From sequence record KT919972.1: a DNA stretch of 64,000 nt; one strand, written 5' to 3'. The number at the start of each line of letters is the position of its first letter. Within the stretch, counting starts at the first letter, position 1. Shown one piece after another: positions 11,090 to 54,722 of the stretch. The position numbers and the translations under genes are program-made. The notes beneath the pieces are model-generated. The model saw nothing but the letters and a program-made list of their open reading frames with translations, searched no databases and was not told where the DNA came from.

Positions 11090-11641
11090 TTACTTCTTAG
11101 CGGCTTTTTTAGCACGTTTAGTAGCCTTTTCAATCTTTATCAGCTCTGCTTCCATCTTCTCAAGACCTTGAAGATATTGATCAGATTGCTTGATGTCGCT
11201 ACGAAATACGCCTTTCGCTGTTGCAATATCAATGTCACTGTTGAGACTTGTGCGAAGCTTACGAACTAAGAACAACGAACGCTCTAAGTCTTTTTCAAAT
11301 GCTGCTACTTTCTTCTCAGTGATATCGTCTTGTTTCAGTGAGCGATACTTCTCGATTTTCTTCATAGTCTTTTTGAGTTCGCTGTAGTCTTTGCGTGCTT
11401 GACCGCCTGCAAATAACGCACCACCAATGAGACCATGAATACCGAGACTAATTGCACCCCATGTTGCAAGTGGTACAGCGACTGCCAACCCACCTGTTGC
11501 TGTCGCACCCGCTGCTGCGGTCATAAAGCCAAATGCAGCACCGAGAGATGCACCAGCTAATGCAGAACGACCAGCCCATTGCTTTATTGTAGCTTCTTTA
11601 AGCTCTGTTTCTTTATATTCATCAAATGTTTTAAGTTCCAT
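11090..11641 (-). CDS. Candidate capsid-internal protein with Gly/Ala-rich hydrophobic hairpin
   Basis: N-terminus MELKTFDEYKETELKE resembles the T4 capsid-targeting sequence; one of only two credible minus-strand genes. Confidence 0.7.
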   Translation of the reverse strand: MELKTFDEYKETELKEATIKQWAGRSALAGASLGAAFGFMTAAAGATATGGLAVAVPLATWGAISLGIHGLIGGALFAGGQARKDYSELKKTMKKIEKYRSLKQDDITEKKVAAFEKDLERSLFLVRKLRTSLNSDIDIATAKGVFRSDIKQSDQYLQGLEKMEAELIKIEKATKRAKKAAKK

Positions 11642-19935: not shown

Positions 19936-20282
19936 ACGCATACCGAATCAACACATCAATCGAAGATCTAGCAATAGTAAAAGGCGATTTGTTTGTTCAA
20001 AGTCCATTCAATGAACATGAATATAAAATGGCTCGTCAACCCCAACGACCACCAATGCACATCGACTTGATTACTCAGTTTCATCATCTTTATAATGAAA
20101 CGACTGCTACTGATGACGAAATCGCTGAATTGGTTCTAGAATGGAAGAATCAATTCAAAACACGAACCGAAGCATTGAATATGTTTCGCCAATCACTAAT
20201 CGAACAGCGCCAATCGATTGATGAACAAATCAAACAAACTACATCTACCATTGAACAATTACGTGAAAAGTTCGGAGAGTAA
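19932..20282 (+). CDS. Hypothetical coiled-coil protein
   Basis: 116 aa; ATGA overlap. Confidence 0.7.
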   Translation: MNAYRINTSIEDLAIVKGDLFVQSPFNEHEYKMARQPQRPPMHIDLITQFHHLYNETTATDDEIAELVLEWKNQFKTRTEALNMFRQSLIEQRQSIDEQIKQTTSTIEQLREKFGE

Positions 20283-20283
20283 T

Positions 20284-20910
20284 ATGCACGCATATGACTT
20301 AGTAAGAAAAATGCAAAAGGTTGTTGAGTCTTGCGAGACAATTGAACAACTACGCAATGCAAGAAAGTACCTCATGCGCTGTCAAGACTATGCACTCGAT
20401 GGTGGCAATGATAGCTACATCACTACTATCATGGTAGAAGTGCAAGACTTAGACGAACGCATCACCGATAAGATTGTTGAGTTGTCTGATACTCGTGGCA
20501 TGAACGCTATCGAAACTGGCGTTATCAAAGTCGGCATCGATATTCATGGCGTAATTGATCAATCACCAGAGTTCTTCGCGCTGTTAAGCAAACTACCAGT
20601 TGAAGTGCATATCATCACTGGCATTAAAGAAGAACTCGATACTGATGTACCAGATGACTTAGAGTATGAGCACTGGTTTAGCATTCATCAATCATGTGAA
20701 GACGACGGCGTTGAAATCTTGTACGACGAGAAAGGTCGCCCATGGGTCGATGACGAAATCTGGAACAACAAGAAAGCTGAATACTGCCGTGAGAATCAAA
20801 TCAATATCATGATCGATGACTCACCAACGTATGCTAGAACCTTCGAAGGTCTTGATACTTTCTATCTACAACTAACCAATACTGTTCGTGATGAATGGAG
20901 ACGCAAATGA
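20284..20910 (+). CDS. HAD-like phosphatase/nucleotidase domain fused to a helical N-domain
   Basis: VGIDIHGVID and IMIDDSP motifs. Confidence 0.7.
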   Translation: MHAYDLVRKMQKVVESCETIEQLRNARKYLMRCQDYALDGGNDSYITTIMVEVQDLDERITDKIVELSDTRGMNAIETGVIKVGIDIHGVIDQSPEFFALLSKLPVEVHIITGIKEELDTDVPDDLEYEHWFSIHQSCEDDGVEILYDEKGRPWVDDEIWNNKKAEYCRENQINIMIDDSPTYARTFEGLDTFYLQLTNTVRDEWRRK

Positions 20911-21092
20911 GAAATTACGGCATTATAGACCGAGAAGGTCGACATCTACTTGAACTTGAGATTGACAATGAGATAAAAGTCATGGCAATCTTTTCTGAAA
21001 TCGAAGATGCAAATCGTGTGCTGTACAAATATGATTTCGACAAACAAGGCTTTCGCGTAATCGAACTACAACCATTGGAAAAGAAACTATGA
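20907..21092 (+). CDS. Hypothetical protein
   Basis: 61 aa; GGAG RBS. Confidence 0.6.
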   Translation: MRNYGIIDREGRHLLELEIDNEIKVMAIFSEIEDANRVLYKYDFDKQGFRVIELQPLEKKL

Positions 21093-21304
21093 ACGTATCA
21101 AATGTAATGTCACAACACGCTGAAATTCAAGATGCACTTATTGCTATGCTCGACGATGAGTTCAACGGCAAAGGTCATATCGAATATGCAGATTACTTCG
21201 ATGACGAACAACTATGGGAAGTGCAATACTTCGATGGTGAAACAGTACAAGAAGTCATTGTAACTACAGTCGCGCTCGAAAAATGGATGCATAAGAACAA
21301 ATGA
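21089..21304 (+). CDS. Small acidic protein
   Basis: 71 aa; resembles next ORF. Confidence 0.65.
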   Translation: MNVSNVMSQHAEIQDALIAMLDDEFNGKGHIEYADYFDDEQLWEVQYFDGETVQEVIVTTVALEKWMHKNK

Positions 21305-21513
21305 TTCATGACATAATCATCGAGCATCGTCGCATAATGAACATAATCACTGAGTTATGCCAACTCAAATCATATGAATTCATTGATGACATCGAGTACG
21401 ATGAAGACAAACAAATATTCTATGTCACTATCGCTGAAGAAACTCAAAACGGCACTGAATACATAGAATGTAAAATCACTCTGCAATTAGTAGAAAACTA
21501 CTATAAGGCTTGA
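21301..21513 (+). CDS. Small acidic protein
   Basis: 70 aa; resembles previous ORF. Confidence 0.65.
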   Translation: MIHDIIIEHRRIMNIITELCQLKSYEFIDDIEYDEDKQIFYVTIAEETQNGTEYIECKITLQLVENYYKA

Positions 21514-21515
21514 CA

Positions 21516-21686
21516 ATGAAATTACCAGAATACTTAAAGCACATCAAAGTAAACGAAAACGTAATCACTGTTGACTCAGCACGCGATAAAGCTTTGGTCA
21601 TCGATTACCTACAATCAATCAAAGCACGATTCCATACTGTACAAAAGACAGTTAGCCGCTGCGAAATTCACGTGAAGAGAGCTTAA
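21516..21686 (+). CDS. Hypothetical protein (56 aa)
   Basis: Fills the gap between neighbouring genes. Confidence 0.55.
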   Translation: MKLPEYLKHIKVNENVITVDSARDKALVIDYLQSIKARFHTVQKTVSRCEIHVKRA

Positions 21687-21688
21687 TC

Positions 21689-22045
21689 ATGAAAGAACTA
21701 CTTAAAACAATGACAGAAACTGAAGAAGCCATCGCAGCTAAGTTTGGTCTCGACCATCTATGGCACGGACTAGTAGACTGCACCGATGTACTATTCACAT
21801 GCGATCTAGTAACTGATGACGTGAAAGATATGCATACTGTCATTGATCAAATACGTGAGTTTCAATACGGCTTTGAAGACGCTAATGCATTAGAAGAAGG
21901 CGAATGCTATGCAGTAGAAGTGTACGGCACAAGCGTGTGGCTATCAACTGATGGCAAATACATGTTGACTGTTGCCAATGACGGACGTGCCAGAGACTTC
22001 TATATCTTCGATATGAATAATCTCAGATCATATGAATTATATTAA
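21689..22045 (+). CDS. Acidic hypothetical protein
   Basis: 118 aa. Confidence 0.7.
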   Translation: MKELLKTMTETEEAIAAKFGLDHLWHGLVDCTDVLFTCDLVTDDVKDMHTVIDQIREFQYGFEDANALEEGECYAVEVYGTSVWLSTDGKYMLTVANDGRARDFYIFDMNNLRSYELY

Positions 22046-22048
22046 AGA

Positions 22049-22114
22049 AAAGGGTTGACAGTTGTCAGCCCTTTCGCGTATCATACACATATCAAATCAA
22101 GAAAGGAAAACATT
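22049..22114 (+). promoter_or_regulatory. Terminator/promoter cassette
   Basis: AAAGGGTTGACA-GT-TGTCAGCCCTTT with -35 TTGACA, -10 TATCAT. Confidence 0.8.
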
Positions 22115-22288
22115 ATGATCGGACTATCTATTATTATACTTGTGTTCACTGTAGTCTTGACGTTCGACTCAGTTGAAAGCATCATGAGCAAAGAATACAA
22201 AACTTTCATCTGTATCTTCCTTGTCATATGCGCTGTCGTTAATGTAGCTAACATGATTGTGATTCACAAATACGGAGTAATATCATGA
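22115..22288 (+). CDS. Small two-TM protein
   Basis: 57 aa, hydrophobic; AGGAA RBS. Confidence 0.6.
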   Translation: MIGLSIIILVFTVVLTFDSVESIMSKEYKTFICIFLVICAVVNVANMIVIHKYGVIS

Positions 22289-22449
22289 GCTTGACAATAC
22301 TACTAATGACACTTCTATGCTGTGCAATACTCACTGGCATGAGTATCTTCAGCTTCATTAACAAACCTAGATTCGTGAAACTAGTAATCACTGCTGTTCT
22401 AGGCTTTGTCTCGTATGTTCTACTACACGTAACGGCAGGCGCAATATGA
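22285..22449 (+). CDS. Small membrane protein
   Basis: 54 aa, hydrophobic; GGAG RBS. Confidence 0.55.
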   Translation: MSLTILLMTLLCCAILTGMSIFSFINKPRFVKLVITAVLGFVSYVLLHVTAGAI

Positions 22450-22661
22450 ATCAAACTATCAAAGCAATATGCATCGACAATACTTCAACTCGTATCGATA
22501 AACCCGAACCACCAAGCGGCATTACTCTAGGCAAAGAATATGTCGTTCACATGTATAACGTAAACGAACATACAAATAAACCACCTATGATTCGTATTAC
22601 TAATGACAACAACCAACGAGCAAGCTATGTCGCTGCACGCTTTAATCTATCAATAGGATAA
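22446..22661 (+). CDS. Hypothetical protein
   Basis: IKAICIDN..ITLGKEY.V pattern; 71 aa. Confidence 0.65.
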   Translation: MNQTIKAICIDNTSTRIDKPEPPSGITLGKEYVVHMYNVNEHTNKPPMIRITNDNNQRASYVAARFNLSIG

Positions 22662-22665
22662 ACTC

Positions 22666-22833
22666 ATGTTCGCACTATCAATCTTAATTCTGATTCTCAC
22701 TACATATCTGTTTGTAACCGATAAATCAAAACGAACAGTTCCATTCGTGGCTCTGCTAATAACAACTGCGTTTAACTGTATCATTCAGTATTACCTAATT
22801 GATATTCTATCATTGAGCTTTAAACTATCGTAA
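22666..22833 (+). CDS. Small two-TM protein
   Basis: 55 aa, hydrophobic; AGGA RBS. Confidence 0.5.
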   Translation: MFALSILILILTTYLFVTDKSKRTVPFVALLITTAFNCIIQYYLIDILSLSFKLS

Positions 22834-22949
22834 TGCAAACACTAATCAATCTACTAAACGATATACCTATCGGCTACATTATGCTTGTTCTATGTGCTCT
22901 AGCAGCTATAGCCGGTTGGTGCCTGAGCGATATATCAAACAATGACTAA
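22833..22949 (+). CDS. Small one-TM peptide
   Basis: 38 aa; TAATG overlap. Confidence 0.45.
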   Translation: MQTLINLLNDIPIGYIMLVLCALAAIAGWCLSDISNND

Positions 22950-22964
22950 AAAAGAGAAAATATT

Positions 22965-23510
22965 ATGAAATTAGTTACTACTACTCGTACAAAACATTAT
23001 GTCAAAAACTTCGATTACATCCGTATGACACGAGGCGAAAAATCTCGTATGGGAAATGTTGTACGTACGTTCAGTCCTAAAACAAAAGAACCAATCTTTA
23101 TCATTGAAGATGTTTTCGGCGGACACACAACTCAAATCAAATCCGATGAGTGGAAATATGAAATTCAACTCAATGATTTGTGGCACAAAGCAGAGTTCGC
23201 TTGGTACGACCGTGACGTGAAAGAATCAAATGTACTAGTATACTACAAAACAAAAGAAGACGTGAAAGAACTCAATGTAGGCGATGTTATCCCTGTTCAT
23301 GCTAGTACGTGGGAGAGCGGCAAAGGCGACAGAGTTCTGAGTGAAACAACTGTCAATGCTTGTATCATTGCATTGAATAACATGCAACTAGTGACAGTCA
23401 TCAACGGAAAATATGTCGTATTTGATTTGCGAACGTTCGACTATACTCATTATAAGCGTTCTACAACAGATGGCTATTATCTGCGTGCAGACTGTTCATT
23501 ACGTGCGTAA
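22965..23510 (+). CDS. Hypothetical protein (paralog of 24666-25274)
   Basis: ELNVGDVI..NGKYVVF..DGYY. Confidence 0.75.
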   Translation: MKLVTTTRTKHYVKNFDYIRMTRGEKSRMGNVVRTFSPKTKEPIFIIEDVFGGHTTQIKSDEWKYEIQLNDLWHKAEFAWYDRDVKESNVLVYYKTKEDVKELNVGDVIPVHASTWESGKGDRVLSETTVNACIIALNNMQLVTVINGKYVVFDLRTFDYTHYKRSTTDGYYLRADCSLRA

Positions 23511-23601
23511 AAACGCTTAGAATCGCTCTCACAGCGTCTCAGAGCATGGTACAGATATAACGCTTTTTAATATATCGCACCATGCCTCGTTTAAATGCAC
23601 A

Positions 23602-23710
23602 TGTGTATAAATCTGTGGATAATATGTGTATGAGATTGTGCATAAGTGTCTGAAATCTGTGTATAAAAACATGATTTAGCTGTGCATAAGTCTGTGGATA
23701 ATGTGGATAA
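23602..23710. promoter_or_regulatory. Cluster of eight co-oriented DnaA boxes (candidate origin or DnaA-titration site)
   Basis: TGTGGATAA at 23614, 23693, 23702; TGTGTATAA at 23602, 23658; TGTGCATAA at 23637, 23681; TGTGTATGA at 23625; in a ~370-bp noncoding gap. Confidence 0.8.
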
Positions 23711-23817
23711 CTTTTTAGTGAAAAAATGGTGAAAGTCTCATCGGCTCCTGTGTGGTACGCGGCAGTCTAAAACCTTACACCATTTATGAAAATCTAATTC
23801 GCTTCGCATCTTCTTGC

Positions 23818-23847
23818 TTGACAGCCAGCGGCATTATGTGAGAGAAT
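23818..23847 (+). promoter_or_regulatory. Probable sigma70 promoter
   Basis: TTGACA-18-GAGAAT with upstream TG. Confidence 0.55.
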
Positions 23848-23880
23848 GCAAAGAGATTTGAACTGCCTACGGAGGTAATT

Positions 23881-24027
23881 GTGATTACATTGGCGTTATT
23901 TTATATGAGTCGCGACATGAAATACTGTGAGCGACCAAGTGACTTGTACCTTGGTACATGTATTTTAGACTTTGCATTAATCGCCACGATGTTCTGTGGT
24001 GTAATGATGTTCACAGGGAATTGGTAA
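23881..24027 (+). CDS. Small membrane protein (48 aa)
   Basis: GGAGG RBS, GTG start, TAATG overlap with next gene. Confidence 0.55.
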   Translation: MITLALFYMSRDMKYCERPSDLYLGTCILDFALIATMFCGVMMFTGNW

Positions 24028-24350
24028 TGTTGTTTAAGAATTACAGAGTGAATCGCCATGTTCGTGCTCGTGCTATAGAGTTATTGAATTGTGGTGAGTT
24101 GCATCGCGTGTATACTTGTTTAGAGTTACATCGTGGTGTGAGTGACGAGATGGTTAGTTTGATTAAGCTTAAACTAAAGCATTTGCAGCGTATGTACGTA
24201 CGGCAGAGTGATTTGCCGAATGATTTAGAAGATTGTTATTCTTTTATCTGTGCGTATCACCCGCCTTGTGAGCGTCGTAAGTTGCGTGAATATGAGCGTA
24301 AGTCGTGGTTGAAATACATTATAGAGAACATTAATAAGGTTAAGATATGA
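24027..24350 (+). CDS. YTC/RxxWL family protein, member 1
   Basis: VRARAIELL..YTC..FIC..RKSWLKYI. Confidence 0.7.
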   Translation: MLFKNYRVNRHVRARAIELLNCGELHRVYTCLELHRGVSDEMVSLIKLKLKHLQRMYVRQSDLPNDLEDCYSFICAYHPPCERRKLREYERKSWLKYIIENINKVKI

Positions 24351-24655
24351 AGAAGTACAGATTAGGTAATTTGTTGCGTGGTGGTTGGTCTGGTGAGTTT
24401 TCCAGTCTTGAAGAAGCGTGGGTTCAGTTAGGTTCGCGTTTTCTACTATCATTTCCGTGTGAGAAATGGGAGAAAGACATTGGTATGTCTATCAATGAAG
24501 ATGGTGGTCGTACTGTGTATATGTATGTTCAAGAAGAGAACAAGTATGGTCAATTAGATTGGGCTTGTTGTAAGAACGGTGTGTTCTATATGAACGAACG
24601 AGTGCCAGTAACGGCAGACGATTACAAGCGTTGCAGTGATGTAGAATTTTTCTAA
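24347..24655 (+). CDS. Hypothetical protein
   Basis: 102 aa; ATGA overlap. Confidence 0.7.
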   Translation: MKKYRLGNLLRGGWSGEFSSLEEAWVQLGSRFLLSFPCEKWEKDIGMSINEDGGRTVYMYVQEENKYGQLDWACCKNGVFYMNERVPVTADDYKRCSDVEFF

Positions 24656-24665
24656 GGGTTATAAG

Positions 24666-25274
24666 ATGAAACGAATTGAAAGACATAAGAAAGTAGTAGA
24701 CAAGAAAGCGATTATGCCGAGCGGTAGTATGGTACGAGTTGAGACGTACTACAACACATGGTCTGGTTATTTGAATTGCCTTGACTCAGGTGATGGTATA
24801 CGTGGTATAGAGCAACCGACTTATATGCTAGTATCTGACAATGGTGCTTTTTACTCAGTTGAAGAAGATAAAGTAAATGGTAACAAGCAGACACAGACAA
24901 AATACGATGGTCAGTTGGTACTTGTACATGCTCGATTGAAGTTGTCAGCGAAAGATTGGGATTGGTACCCTTGTAAGTGGAAGAGTGGTCGTCTTGTATA
25001 TGCGTATAAAGAAACTGATTTTGTCGATGAAGAGCACGAGCTAGTGGTTGGTGAGATTATAGACATTTATGCCGCAAGCGATAGTACATCGTCATATGCA
25101 CATGACGCGACAGTTGTTGTATCACGTCCGACACAAATTGCTGTTGAGACGTATGGTAAACTAGTAGTGTTTACGGTTGGTTCTGATACAGATGAACTAG
25201 TATCTGATTGTGGTGATTATCGTATTGATGGTCGATATGCTGCTAGTCAGTACGATGAAGAGCTTCATTCGTAA
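24666..25274 (+). CDS. Hypothetical protein (paralog of 22965-23510)
   Basis: ELVVGEII..YGKLVVF..DGRY. Confidence 0.75.
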   Translation: MKRIERHKKVVDKKAIMPSGSMVRVETYYNTWSGYLNCLDSGDGIRGIEQPTYMLVSDNGAFYSVEEDKVNGNKQTQTKYDGQLVLVHARLKLSAKDWDWYPCKWKSGRLVYAYKETDFVDEEHELVVGEIIDIYAASDSTSSYAHDATVVVSRPTQIAVETYGKLVVFTVGSDTDELVSDCGDYRIDGRYAASQYDEELHS

Positions 25275-25280
25275 AAGTTA

Positions 25281-25319
25281 AAGAAAAGGGTTGCGCTATG
25301 CAGCCCTTTTTTATATTCT
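25281..25319 (+). promoter_or_regulatory. Terminator/promoter cassette; left 31-bp direct repeat
   Basis: AAGAAAAGGGTTGCGCTATGCAGCCCTTTTT; TTGCGC-17-TATTCT. Confidence 0.85.
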
Positions 25320-25343
25320 ACAGTTTTTGAATTGGAGGATAAT

Positions 25344-26414
25344 ATGACTAGAATTAAATGGACACCTGAACGTCTTAAAGAAGATGCGTTGAAATACAAG
25401 ACTCGCCAAGAATGGAAGAAAATGTCATCTGGATACTCTGCTGCTCAGAGTAGGGGTATAATTGATGAGTGTTGTGGTCATATGACAATGCATCAAAAAC
25501 CTAAAGGGTATTGGACACTTGAACGTCTTAAAGAAGATGCGTTGAAATACAATACTAGAAGTGATTGGCAGAAAATGTCAGGCAGTGCTTATGATGCTGC
25601 TCATAAGAAAGGGTTGCTTGACAAGTGTTGTGGTCATATGAAGGCATCAACTAAAAACGCATTTTCTCGCTGTATATATCGAATCTATGCAGGTAATGAG
25701 ATTTACATTGGGTTGACTTACGATACTAAGCAACGCTTTAGTTCTCATCGAAAGAAAACAACTCAGGTCATAGACCTAATCGAACGTCATGGCATTGAAA
25801 ACGTCAAGTTCGAGCAATTGACTGAGTATATGAATCAAGAACTGGCGCAAATTGCAGAGAAAGAACACATTGAGTACTACAGAAACAATGGATGGATTAT
25901 TTTAAATCGTTCTAAAGCTGGTGCATTGGGGAGTTCAACATTAAAATGGACACCTGAACGTCTTAAAGAAGATGCGTTGAAATACAAGACAAGTTCTGAG
26001 TGGCGGAAAATGTCACCCAGTGCTTACGCTGCTGCTCATAAGAAAGGATTACTTGACGAGTGTTATGCTCATATGACAATGCATCAAAAACCTAATGGAT
26101 ATTGGACACTTGAACGTCTTAAAGAAGATGCATTGAAATATAAGACTCGCCGAGAATGGAGGGAAAACTCTAGCGGTTGTAGTAATGCTTATAACCAGGG
26201 TATAATTGATGAGTGCTGTGCTCATATGGAATTACAAAGAAAACCTAATGGATATTGGACACTTGAACGTCTTAAAGAAGATGCATTGAAATATAAGACT
26301 AGAAGTGATTGGCAGAAAAACTCTAGCGCGGCTTATTCTTCTGCTAATAGAAAGGGGTTTCTTGATGAGTGCTGTGCTCATATGACAAAGAACGCTCGTT
26401 GCAAGCGAAAATAA
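25344..26414 (+). CDS. GIY-YIG (Seg-like) free-standing endonuclease with five ~50-aa repeats
   Basis: CIYRI..IYIGLT..KQR..H..E..I..Y..LN core; 2 N-terminal and 3 C-terminal WT.ERLKEDALKY..C..HM repeats. Confidence 0.85.
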   Translation: MTRIKWTPERLKEDALKYKTRQEWKKMSSGYSAAQSRGIIDECCGHMTMHQKPKGYWTLERLKEDALKYNTRSDWQKMSGSAYDAAHKKGLLDKCCGHMKASTKNAFSRCIYRIYAGNEIYIGLTYDTKQRFSSHRKKTTQVIDLIERHGIENVKFEQLTEYMNQELAQIAEKEHIEYYRNNGWIILNRSKAGALGSSTLKWTPERLKEDALKYKTSSEWRKMSPSAYAAAHKKGLLDECYAHMTMHQKPNGYWTLERLKEDALKYKTRREWRENSSGCSNAYNQGIIDECCAHMELQRKPNGYWTLERLKEDALKYKTRSDWQKNSSAAYSSANRKGFLDECCAHMTKNARCKRK

Positions 26415-26417
26415 TTG

Positions 26418-26492
26418 AAGAAAAGGGTTGCGCTATGCAGCCCTTTTTAGTATTATAGCTTTATCGAAACGACAACGACTAAAGAGAATATT
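26418..26492 (+). promoter_or_regulatory. Terminator/promoter/leader cassette; right 31-bp direct repeat
   Basis: Same 31-mer as 25281; TTGCGC-17-TATTAT; ATCGAAACG leader. Confidence 0.85.
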
Positions 26493-51010: not shown

Positions 51011-51328
51011 ATGGTATTCACTGAAGAGCAGCTTGATCAAGTCGAGCACAACTACTCGCATATTGATACTGTCAATCTTGCAGATAGAAAGGGCGTGCCA
51101 CAAGCGAAGTATGTCATAGAGATACGACAAGGCACGTATACTAAATTCAAAACATCTTGGTTAAGTCAAGATTCATGCGAAGAGCGAGATATTGACCCGG
51201 AGCTAGTCGGTTATTGGATCTTATCAGACGCAATCGACCCTTATTGGTACTCAGTTCAAGAATGCTTAGAGCAGTATGAATGGGAACCAGCACGCGAAGT
51301 AACAATCACAACATGGGAAGCAATTTAA
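51011..51328 (+). CDS. Acidic hypothetical protein
   Basis: GAGGT RBS before ATG 51011. Confidence 0.65.
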   Translation: MVFTEEQLDQVEHNYSHIDTVNLADRKGVPQAKYVIEIRQGTYTKFKTSWLSQDSCEERDIDPELVGYWILSDAIDPYWYSVQECLEQYEWEPAREVTITTWEAI

Positions 51329-53898: not shown

Positions 53899-54722
53899 TG
53901 GAAATTGAAATCGAACGTAAATGGCTAGTTACTGGCGAACAATATCGCGAATTTGTAAACTGGCTGAGCTATCGTGACAGCGACATCACGAGGATGAACA
54001 TATATCAACGTTATTTCAAGAAAAATGAAATCGCTTTTATTGATGGTTCGTTTTACATCAACAGTCGAGTGAAAGCACATCGCGGTTATCTAATCAAAGC
54101 ACCGAAAGATTGCCCTGACTTAACTGGCGTGAATCTACGTAAGCTCGGTGCCCGTATGCGTCGAACTGTGCATGAAGATTCATCTGAAAGTCTTGAATTC
54201 ACTATCAAGTTACCTCACGGTGACGGAATTTCAAAGCGTGAAATCAACATTCCACTAGAGTCTGGTTATACAGATTTGATCGTTGATGCGATTGAGAAAG
54301 ATGACAAGCTCAATCACAATACAACTGAAGTGACACCAACTGGTTTGATTAAAAAAGTTCGTTGGTCTGGTGAAGTTGATGACGTGCATTATGACGCTGA
54401 TCGATTCACCAATCGCCCGTTTTACATCATCGAAGCTGAATTCAATAACGAAGAAGATGCAGATGCATTCGTCGCGCCTTTTGAGTTCATTCGAGAAGTA
54501 ACCGAAGATAAACGTTTCAGCAACAAGCGCATGGCATGGAATCACGATGTCGCAGACGGTTTGGTTAATAACATTCGCATGTATATCGAGAAGCTTGAGA
54601 AAGAAGCGCAAGCATTGCGAGGCGACACGCTAGTTTCAATGCGCGAAAGCGTAACGAACGAAATCATGGCAGAAAATTACGAGAAAATTGCTCGTGACTT
54701 AAAACACATTGTAGGTGCGTAA
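53898..54722 (+). CDS. CYTH-domain (triphosphate tunnel metalloenzyme) protein
   Basis: EIEIERKW (ExExK), R.RR, TIK, RE.N, IKKVR, D.D.F, IIEAEF, EVT.D.R.SN. Confidence 0.85.
   Translation: MEIEIERKWLVTGEQYREFVNWLSYRDSDITRMNIYQRYFKKNEIAFIDGSFYINSRVKAHRGYLIKAPKDCPDLTGVNLRKLGARMRRTVHEDSSESLEFTIKLPHGDGISKREINIPLESGYTDLIVDAIEKDDKLNHNTTEVTPTGLIKKVRWSGEVDDVHYDADRFTNRPFYIIEAEFNNEEDADAFVAPFEFIREVTEDKRFSNKRMAWNHDVADGLVNNIRMYIEKLEKEAQALRGDTLVSMRESVTNEIMAENYEKIARDLKHIVGA

Follow-up and report, generated by a model that had tools for sequence, protein, structure and literature searches.

Does an abrupt reversal of strand composition, in a region where all genes point the same way, mark a place where replication of a phage genome begins? 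This question is raised by a locus of the Vibrio phage phi-Grn1, a KVP40-like T4-type phage (Schizotequatrovirus) with a genome of 248,605 bp. The window analysed here is the last 64 kb of the phi-Grn1 record KT919972.1, to which it is 100% identical, and its positions equal record positions minus 184,605. A long series of small + strand early genes surrounds the locus, and the dda helicase gene is about 7.5 kb upstream of it; from 11.9 kb to the end of the window all genes are on the + strand save one open reading frame (ORF) of 41 codons. At about 23.6 kb, across a non-coding gap that carries an array of DnaA-box consensus sites and a predicted early promoter, A/C-rich DNA gives way to G/T-rich DNA. 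An earlier note had described this flip from a few spot counts and had taken it as a sign of a bidirectional origin. The flip is a real, conserved, position-linked strand-composition switch with a conserved non-coding control region at its centre. The classical reading, that of a replichore boundary, is contradicted at genome scale, and the flip is a hint of a replication start site but not proof of one.

The spot counts were exact (C12/G6 at 22801-22860, C14/G9 at 22981-23040, G17/C8 at 24061-24120 and G21/C6 at 24361-24420), and a full computation of GC and AT skew in 300-bp windows confirmed the A/C-rich left and the G/T-rich right. GC skew drops to -0.29 (22550-22849) and then reaches +0.42 (24350-24649), and AT skew ranges from about +0.07 to +0.26 on the left and from -0.04 to -0.16 on the right. 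Compared with tiles of the same size across the window, the left block (21301-22950) has a skew, -0.093, in the lowest 0.08%, and the right block (23881-25274) one, +0.326, in the top 0.3%. The genes of both sides are on the + strand, and gene direction, which stays constant across the flip, is insufficient on its own to explain it, as the note had argued; the signal is also present at synonymous sites.

For the scans of skew steps and cumulative skew, the whole phi-Grn1 genome was reassembled from five record pieces, and 1, 1.5 or 2.5 kb were compared on each side of every position. The largest positive GC-skew step in the genome falls at record position 208201, window position 23596 (delta 0.31-0.39); the next-best step, with a delta of 0.23, is the main coding-strand switch near 54 kb. 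Consecutive genes give the same picture. With genes called as the simple longest ATG-ORFs (383 genes), the left block is a run of nine with a third-position keto (G/T) skew below -0.1, a value that low being found in 12.5% of the genes of the genome, and it is followed by a run of four with a keto skew above +0.2; elsewhere runs of either kind do not exceed two genes. Third-position GC skew is -0.08 to -0.73 in the left block, where the third-position AT skew (AT3) is positive. In the three right-hand genes from 24027 to 25274, GC skew is +0.28 to +0.41, its third-position value (GC3) is +0.38 to +0.52 and AT3 is -0.22 to -0.53.

The flip is nevertheless limited in reach. Beyond about 20.2 kb on the left and about 26.45 kb on the right skew has ordinary values, a return to background within about 3 kb leftward and 1.4-2.8 kb rightward, and 1-kb bins are positive almost throughout the window. 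The only other negative bin, at 11-12 kb, corresponds to the minus-strand gene phiGrn1_0260 (11090-11641), which fits a skew that tracks the coding strand everywhere but at the locus under study. At genome scale, negative skew is confined to blocks of minus-strand genes, and the cumulative minimum is at record position 54139, a divergent coding-strand switch, and not at the gap, where the earlier note had expected it. Within the window, the predicted minimum at 23.5-23.9 kb is found on the detrended curve, from which the mean trend was removed (23602, the first DnaA box), but not on the raw cumulative G-C curve, which climbs from one end of the window to the other apart from a local dip at 23144. 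This dip lies about 0.5 kb to the left of the gap because the intervening gene phiGrn1_0284 has an ordinary composition. Nor is the flip the genome-scale signal of a G/T-rich leading strand to which the premise of the earlier note refers, since the skew of the genome tracks the coding strand.

The phi-Grn1 genome paper agrees that skew follows the coding strand (PMC5107563). A 'putative origin' was set there at record position 51,089 from cumulative skew, a position that simply marks a coding-strand switch; the paper does not contain the word DnaA, and the passages found give no second origin position.

The contribution of protein sequence was separated from that of codon choice by calculating the skew that each gene would have if its protein were encoded with genome-wide codon usage. 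Amino-acid composition, named in the earlier note as something that could undo its case, accounts for roughly half of the effect, and codon choice is the remainder; the two components move in the same direction. The skew of the gene for a 55-aa membrane protein (22666-22833, -0.27) is wholly amino-acid driven. Codon-choice residuals are negative in seven consecutive left genes and positive in four right genes, with AT residuals of the opposite sign, and given this coherent residual amino-acid composition alone was rejected as the cause.

The comparison of codon classes, which used corrected gene coordinates for the locus, showed that the flip holds at third and synonymous positions, with an identical sign in R-ending, Y-ending and four-fold codons (left versus right, p = 1.6e-9, 8e-6 and 1.6e-8, respectively). 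In the right block, G ends 59% of the R-ending two-fold codons (34% in the genome), T ends 70% of the Y-ending ones (genome, 52%) and C occupies 4% of four-fold sites (11%). In the left block, A ends 82% of the R-ending codons versus 66% in the genome, C ends 57% of the Y-ending codons versus 48%, and four-fold G-C skew is -0.34 versus +0.21. Such a uniform keto-versus-amino bias in all codon classes is a mutational-type pattern, as strand-specific mutational pressure would give, and not one of optimal-codon selection; we assume that a bias in every class is unlike the optimal-codon pattern of the host.

Neither the kind of genes nor the presence of a promoter accounts for the flip. The third-position keto skew averages +0.016 in other small genes (<80 aa) and +0.013 in other hydrophobic ones, and a gene-class cause of the left block (tiny or membrane proteins) was rejected, as comparable genes elsewhere are not A/C-rich. 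A promoter-like site at 22055 is located inside the left block. Together, these two observations indicate that the left block is a positional effect and not one of gene class or of a single operon. Around 25 other sigma-70-like promoters that precede co-oriented genes, mean skew is 0.076 upstream and 0.078 downstream; with no downstream G/T enrichment there, a general promoter-proximal effect was likewise rejected. Four causes of the flip are excluded: chance, the class of the genes, amino-acid composition on its own and a general effect of promoters.

The flip is present at the syntenic gap in nine relatives: ValKK3, phi-ST2, VH7D, KVP40, nt-1, VS2, QD01, F86 and D484. At 1 kb, the KVP40 skews are -0.13 on the left and +0.31 on the right; in nt-1, QD01, F86 and D484 the left genes have GC3 values of -0.1 to -0.7 and the right genes of +0.1 to +0.5. 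The A/C sign of the left block is also found in KVP40, nt-1, QD01, F86 and D484. The right-hand protein of about 200 aa is 29-65% identical across lineages, and the additional right-block genes of single lineages carry the same G/T bias. The right block varies from 0.76 kb in QD01 to about 2.7 kb in F86, and in six lineages it ends at a PeSL element, a terminator stem-loop that contains an early promoter; VH7D, KVP40, nt-1, QD01 and F86 all have this element behind the block.

The DnaA boxes do not have the same distribution as the flip. They are kept in the ValKK3 clade (seven), in nt-1 (four), in VS2 and QD01 (five) and partly in F86, whereas in the KVP40 subclade and in D484 a segment of about 120 bp that includes them is replaced, leaving zero boxes, with flip and gap retained. 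The skew therefore does not provide the independent support for a DnaA-box origin that the earlier note had seen in it, as KVP40 and D484 have the flip without boxes. The flip is old, tied to the locus, separable from the DnaA boxes and bounded by the operon on the right.

The ORF calls cover 91% of phi-Grn1 bases, against which a gap of this size can be set. The features of the locus are listed in Table 1. The most conserved motif of the gap, ATATATCGCACCATGCCTCGTT, sits upstream of the box array and is common to all eight aligned lineages; an Rfam search of the gap returned no family match, and the motif has none. Three of the seven sites in the array are perfect boxes, TGTGGATAA, and an extra degenerate box is found at 23625-23633. 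In the window, 12 TTATNCACA sites are present versus 4.4 expected, seven of them in the array. It is the only DnaA-box cluster in the 248.6-kb genome, with 7 of the 21 TTATNCACA sites within 109 bp.

The promoter-like sequence at 23818 has 10 of 12 consensus matches, with TG preceding the second hexamer, and is kept in the ValKK3 clade, VS2, QD01 and KVP40; it would drive the right-hand operon. The strong right skew coincides with one predicted transcription unit, from the promoter at 23818-23847 through four ORFs to 25274, and ends at the PeSL. Only in the right block does the non-template strand have more G than C and more T than A within the limits of the unit; on the coding strand of the left block the sign is the opposite. 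The PeSL itself has a fold energy of -18.2 kcal/mol (z = -5.3) and fits the nt-1/KVP40 consensus, an A3-4 G3-loop-C3 T3-4 stem-loop with a TTGYVH...TAWWAT promoter (PMC4122927).

Table 1. Features at the strand-composition switch of phage phi-Grn1 (window coordinates).
Feature	Position	Strand	Description
Left A/C-rich block	20221-22949	+	10-11 tightly packed small genes; hydrophilic and small membrane proteins
phiGrn1_0284	22965-23510	+	181 aa; near-average composition; GC skew +0.05, GC3 -0.26
Conserved non-coding gap	23511-23880		About 370 bp; alignable in eight lineages
Most conserved gap motif	23570-23591	+	Form ATATATCGCACCATGCCTCGTT; most positions invariant in the eight-lineage alignment
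DnaA-box consensus array	23602-23710	+	Seven same-orientation sites, TGTGNATAA = TTATNCACA
Early-type sigma-70 promoter (predicted)	23818-23847	+	TTGACA, 18-nt spacer, TG-extended GAGAAT; consensus match only
48-aa ORF, first operon gene	23881-24027	+	GTG start after GGAGG Shine-Dalgarno; phrog_16778
107-aa gene	24027-24350	+	G/T-rich
102-aa gene	24347-24655	+	G/T-rich
202-aa gene	24666-25274	+	G/T-rich; family confined to KVP40-like Vibrio phages
PeSL element	25282-25312	+	A-run/GGG-loop-CCC/T-run stem-loop terminator; embedded early promoter
GIY-YIG homing-endonuclease gene	25344-26414	+	Pfam PF01541, PHROG homing-endonuclease families; GC3 +0.35

The right-hand genes offer few functional clues. 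The 107-, 102- and 202-aa genes had no Pfam hit, and their PHROG matches were only to families of unknown function; homologs of the 48-aa ORF stand at the head of or inside the right block in KVP40, nt-1, QD01, F86 and D484. The 102-aa gene is deleted in the contigs of runs X1 and X17 (about 24351-24613 skipped), so the cassette content of the operon varies among close relatives. In the annotation, the start of gene 0285 is probably the GTG at 23881 behind GGAGG, and that of gene 0286 probably the ATG at 24027, which overlaps the preceding stop codon. The stem-loop and its promoter are near-identical in KVP40, nt-1 and QD01 (L007 8899-8990; L011 5685-5775; L013 5075-5165), and in KVP40 the leader upstream is annotated as the N-termini of downstream genes, with 'CSHLLYYLYIETR'-like translations. 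The homing-endonuclease gene, located between the PeSL and the next cassette, is a mobile insert that adds 1.1 kb of milder positive skew in phi-Grn1; ValKK3 lacks it, as does the run X2 contig, in which 25312-26450 is skipped, and phi-ST2 has a shorter form.

On the left, the small conserved ORFs at 22285-22449, 22666-22833 and 22833-22949 are unannotated in KT919972, and two of the three are annotated in ValKK3. The phiGrn1_0284 gene is sporadic, being found in phi-Grn1, phi-pp2 and VS2 only and always directly left of the gap, and it is missing from the run X2 contig of a close relative, which skips 22946-23508. With the 202-aa gene it shares weak paralogy (E = 0.002) but not the G/T-rich codon usage. 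The independently deposited GenBank records of R10Z, R11Z, PVA23, PVA8 and PC-Liy1 start or end within about 50-250 bp of the gap, at the equivalent of window positions 23777-23806 (approximately), a point flanked by the box array and the promoter; the cause could be a real end, a break in assembly or a convention. Double-strand-break resection or linear-end effects at the gap were rejected, by reasoning only, as the polarity that they predict is opposite to the one observed.

In our view the flip is best read as the trace of a local initiation zone in the gap, which would expose opposite strands as single strands on either side; from the sequence patterns we would give this a probability of roughly 40%. 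On the right the + strand is raised in G and T and strongly depleted of C, and the left is its mirror image, which is the pattern expected of single-strand exposure with C-to-T and A-to-G deamination. The extra single-stranded time would fall on the + strand to the right of the gap and on the - strand to its left. The most economical source would be a process that begins at the gap and proceeds outward. Rightward, the early promoter at 23818 would transcribe the G-rich, C-poor operon and displace the non-template strand, perhaps in an R-loop from which DNA synthesis is primed, as at T4 oriA, oriF and oriE, and the effect would stop where the transcript ends, at the PeSL. Leftward, the - strand may be bared over a few kb by a retrograde fork. 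Most lineages would have the DnaA-box array as an accessory, and it would not be the cause. We infer single-strand exposure as the cause, as we do any R-loop and any initiation of replication at the gap.

An initiation zone is favoured because it covers both halves of the flip, their mirror symmetry, the position at a non-coding element and the independence from the boxes. It draws support from the largest skew step of the genome falling exactly at the gap, with the detrended minimum at 23602, from the agreement in sign of all codon classes and of the amino-acid component, from the longest A/C-rich run of genes being followed by the longest G/T-rich one, from the positional nature of the left block, and from the 25 other promoters without enrichment, which imply that proximity to a promoter is not enough. 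The recurrence of the flip in relatives, including right-hand genes that are only 29-65% identical or additional, also supports it, as does the nature of the gap, conserved non-coding DNA in which a direct-repeat array and an early promoter are combined as at T4 oriE. A more far-reaching proposal is that the gap at 23511-23880 is the principal origin of the KVP40-like phages (Schizotequatrovirus/Mylasvirus), primed by an R-loop from an early promoter, mostly equipped with DnaA boxes and leaving a local footprint. The footprint would then be roughly one Okazaki-fragment length per side, and would arise if a first, origin-dependent round of replication were inherited by much of the burst. We regard this proposal as rather unlikely.

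Several points weigh against initiation at the gap. Searches of public sequencing runs for replication data gave nothing but assembled contigs of related phages, among which neither an RNA library nor an infection time course could be identified. Rightward, the bias is as long as the operon, from 0.76 kb in QD01 to 2.7 kb in F86, and does not cover a fixed distance, which fits a purely operon-intrinsic cause as well. No clear AT-rich unwinding element is seen at the gap; A+T reaches at most 70% in 40-bp windows, and the sole AT run is 12 bp long (23565-23576). Four-fold sites are not fully saturated between phi-Grn1 and KVP40, nt-1 and QD01 (identity 0.53-0.68 versus 0.33-0.42 expected), so part of the conservation of the flip is shared ancestry. 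Substitutions polarised among close relatives, as singletons in phi-Grn1, ValKK3 and VH7D with phi-ST2 as fourth taxon, are too few to reveal an ongoing bias: 11 changes were usable in the right block, and in the left block 40 were toward keto and 34 toward amino. Moreover, replication of T4-type phages is mostly recombination-dependent, so there is no a priori reason to expect that an origin would leave a lasting footprint (PMC3016281).

The T4 genome served as a control, and it was negative. Its record annotates oriA (16763), oriE (79355), oriF (115321) and oriG (152947). Neither oriA nor oriE nor oriG has a local skew step (z of 1.7 or less), and the large skew steps of T4 are all coding-strand switches, the one near oriF being the uvsW/uvsY switch. 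A skew step is therefore not a validated mark of a T4-type origin, and oriA and oriC have been reported to lie outside the skew shifts of T4 (PMC3016281). The two phages may differ in the footprints that deamination leaves. The DNA of T4 contains glucosylated hydroxymethylcytosine, and neither a dCMP hydroxymethylase nor a glucosyltransferase is annotated in phi-Grn1.

The T4 origins are nonetheless among the closest known systems. In T4, an early promoter is paired with iterons at oriE, and R-loop transcripts serve as the origin primers (PMC3016281). Like oriE, oriA, oriF and oriG, the phi-Grn1 gap belongs to a T4-type phage, and, as at oriE, a direct-repeat array lies beside an early promoter; the locus is in a non-structural region. 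According to the T4 record, the primer transcripts of oriA and oriF double as mRNAs, and the candidate primer transcript here would also be the mRNA of the downstream genes. The phi-Grn1 repeats, however, are host DnaA-box consensus sites and those of T4 oriE are 12-nt phage iterons; the mapped T4 origins lack a local skew flip. Synteny with T4 oriA via dda was considered and rejected, since oriA is upstream of dda in the direction of transcription and the gap is 7.5 kb downstream. No published description of this locus and no published replication origin of a KVP40-like vibriophage were found in the literature, and none of the titles and abstracts retrieved on KVP40 and DnaA bears on the locus.

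A close rival to local initiation, and one that we consider quite possible, is that the composition is intrinsic to the operons or cassettes and unrelated to replication. The right block would be a PeSL-bounded early operon kept G/T-rich by very heavy or very early transcription, through deamination of the non-template strand, or alternatively by selection on the mRNA, for example for C-poor RNA that resists Rho loading. The left block would be a separate gene set, A/C-rich with C over G, perhaps resembling a Rho-utilisation RNA that ends a long early unit, and the two would adjoin because a transcription-unit boundary lies at the gap. In accordance with this, the right block runs from the promoter at 23818 to the PeSL in six lineages whatever its length, the flip does not require DnaA boxes, and genome-wide skew follows transcription in T4 (PMC3016281) and in phi-Grn1 (PMC5107563). 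The setting also suits it. Regions of this kind are termed PeSL-rich hyperplastic regions of T4-like phages, with shuffled cassettes (PMC4122927), and phiGrn1_0284, the 102-aa gene and the homing endonuclease are inserted or deleted among close relatives.

Other observations are harder to fit to an intrinsic cause. Sense transcription cannot yield an A/C-rich coding strand, the left block covers at least two transcription units, and other promoters are without downstream enrichment. A preference for G- and T-ending codons throughout all classes does not correspond to the codons that are optimal in the host, going by what is generally known of host usage. Finally, it would be a coincidence for the two most extreme runs of the genome to adjoin one another in an origin-like order.

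Other known systems share some features with the locus. ColE1 and CpG-island promoters are examples of R-loop regions linked to GC skew. Like such regions, the right block has a G-rich, C-poor non-template strand that extends from just downstream of a promoter to a terminator; unlike them, it has only about 27% G and few G-clusters, the other 25 promoters are without the effect, and the mirror-image left block is left unexplained. Early cassettes bounded by PeSLs (PMC2839356, PMC4122927) share with the locus the canonical nt-1/KVP40-type PeSL end and the cassette indels among close relatives, but the upstream gap of phi-Grn1 is a 370-bp conserved non-coding region and not a PeSL. The passages found of the PeSL paper cover gene shuffling and do not mention a switch in strand composition (PMC4122927).

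Divergent transcription would produce exactly the mirror symmetry observed: with a leftward antisense promoter in or near the gap in addition to the one at 23818, both non-template strands would be G/T-rich, mimicking an origin. Antisense transcripts are known in T4 biology, and a weak promoter-like site (9 of 12 matches) is found on the - strand at 23862-23833. In alignment, however, this site decays to 3-4 of 6 matches per hexamer in KVP40, VS2 and QD01, the late-promoter motif TATAAATA is absent from both strands within 9 kb, and no - strand genes are present, so that we consider this explanation improbable.

There is an equally slim chance that the flip is a mosaic relic, in which two cassettes from donors of different strand composition came to abut at the gap by accident. 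The proteins are all ORFans restricted to this phage group, and gene content is variable in a hyperplastic region with PeSL-mediated shuffling (PMC4122927). Against a relic, none of the lineages examined lacks the flip, even at 29-44% protein identity, a distance at which four-fold sites come close to random (identity 0.59 versus 0.51 expected in F86, and 0.47 versus 0.32 in D484), so a foreign composition should have decayed. The lineage-specific extra genes of the right block share its bias, and the left-block singletons show no drift to the genome mean. A recently acquired block, which the earlier note had allowed for, is unlikely on the same grounds of conservation and absence of drift.

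A classical, bidirectional chromosome-type origin with leading/lagging bias as in bacteria has the correct polarity and location, with a DnaA-box array at the switch point, but it is very improbable, given the absence of a genome-scale inflection, the global extremes at coding-strand switches, the loss of the effect within 1.4-3 kb, the flip without boxes and the negative T4 control. Like a bacterial oriC, the locus shows a change from C/A-rich to G/T-rich on the + strand that coincides with a DnaA-box cluster. Unlike it, the change is local, over a few kb, with the global cumulative extremes elsewhere, and the gap has no evident AT-rich unwinding element and neither dnaA nor another initiator gene adjacent to it. 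The origin interpretation of the earlier note is thus partly supported: the polarity and the switch point at about 23.6 kb stand, but the signal is gone within a few kb and does not persist over the replichore.

A unique, conserved synonymous-site switch beside a DnaA-box array and an early promoter is a precise and cheap experimental target. Should the locus not be an origin, a short operon whose strand bias is among the strongest in the genome and is mirrored upstream would stand as an unexplained compositional phenomenon and as a caution against taking skew flips in phages for origins. If the gap is the principal origin, it would be, as far as we found, the first origin of a T4-type phage tied to host DnaA, and the first in this phage family to be located by a local synonymous-site skew flip without a change of coding strand. 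Local skew at synonymous sites could then be used to find origins in other large T4-type phages in which whole-genome skew reflects only transcription.

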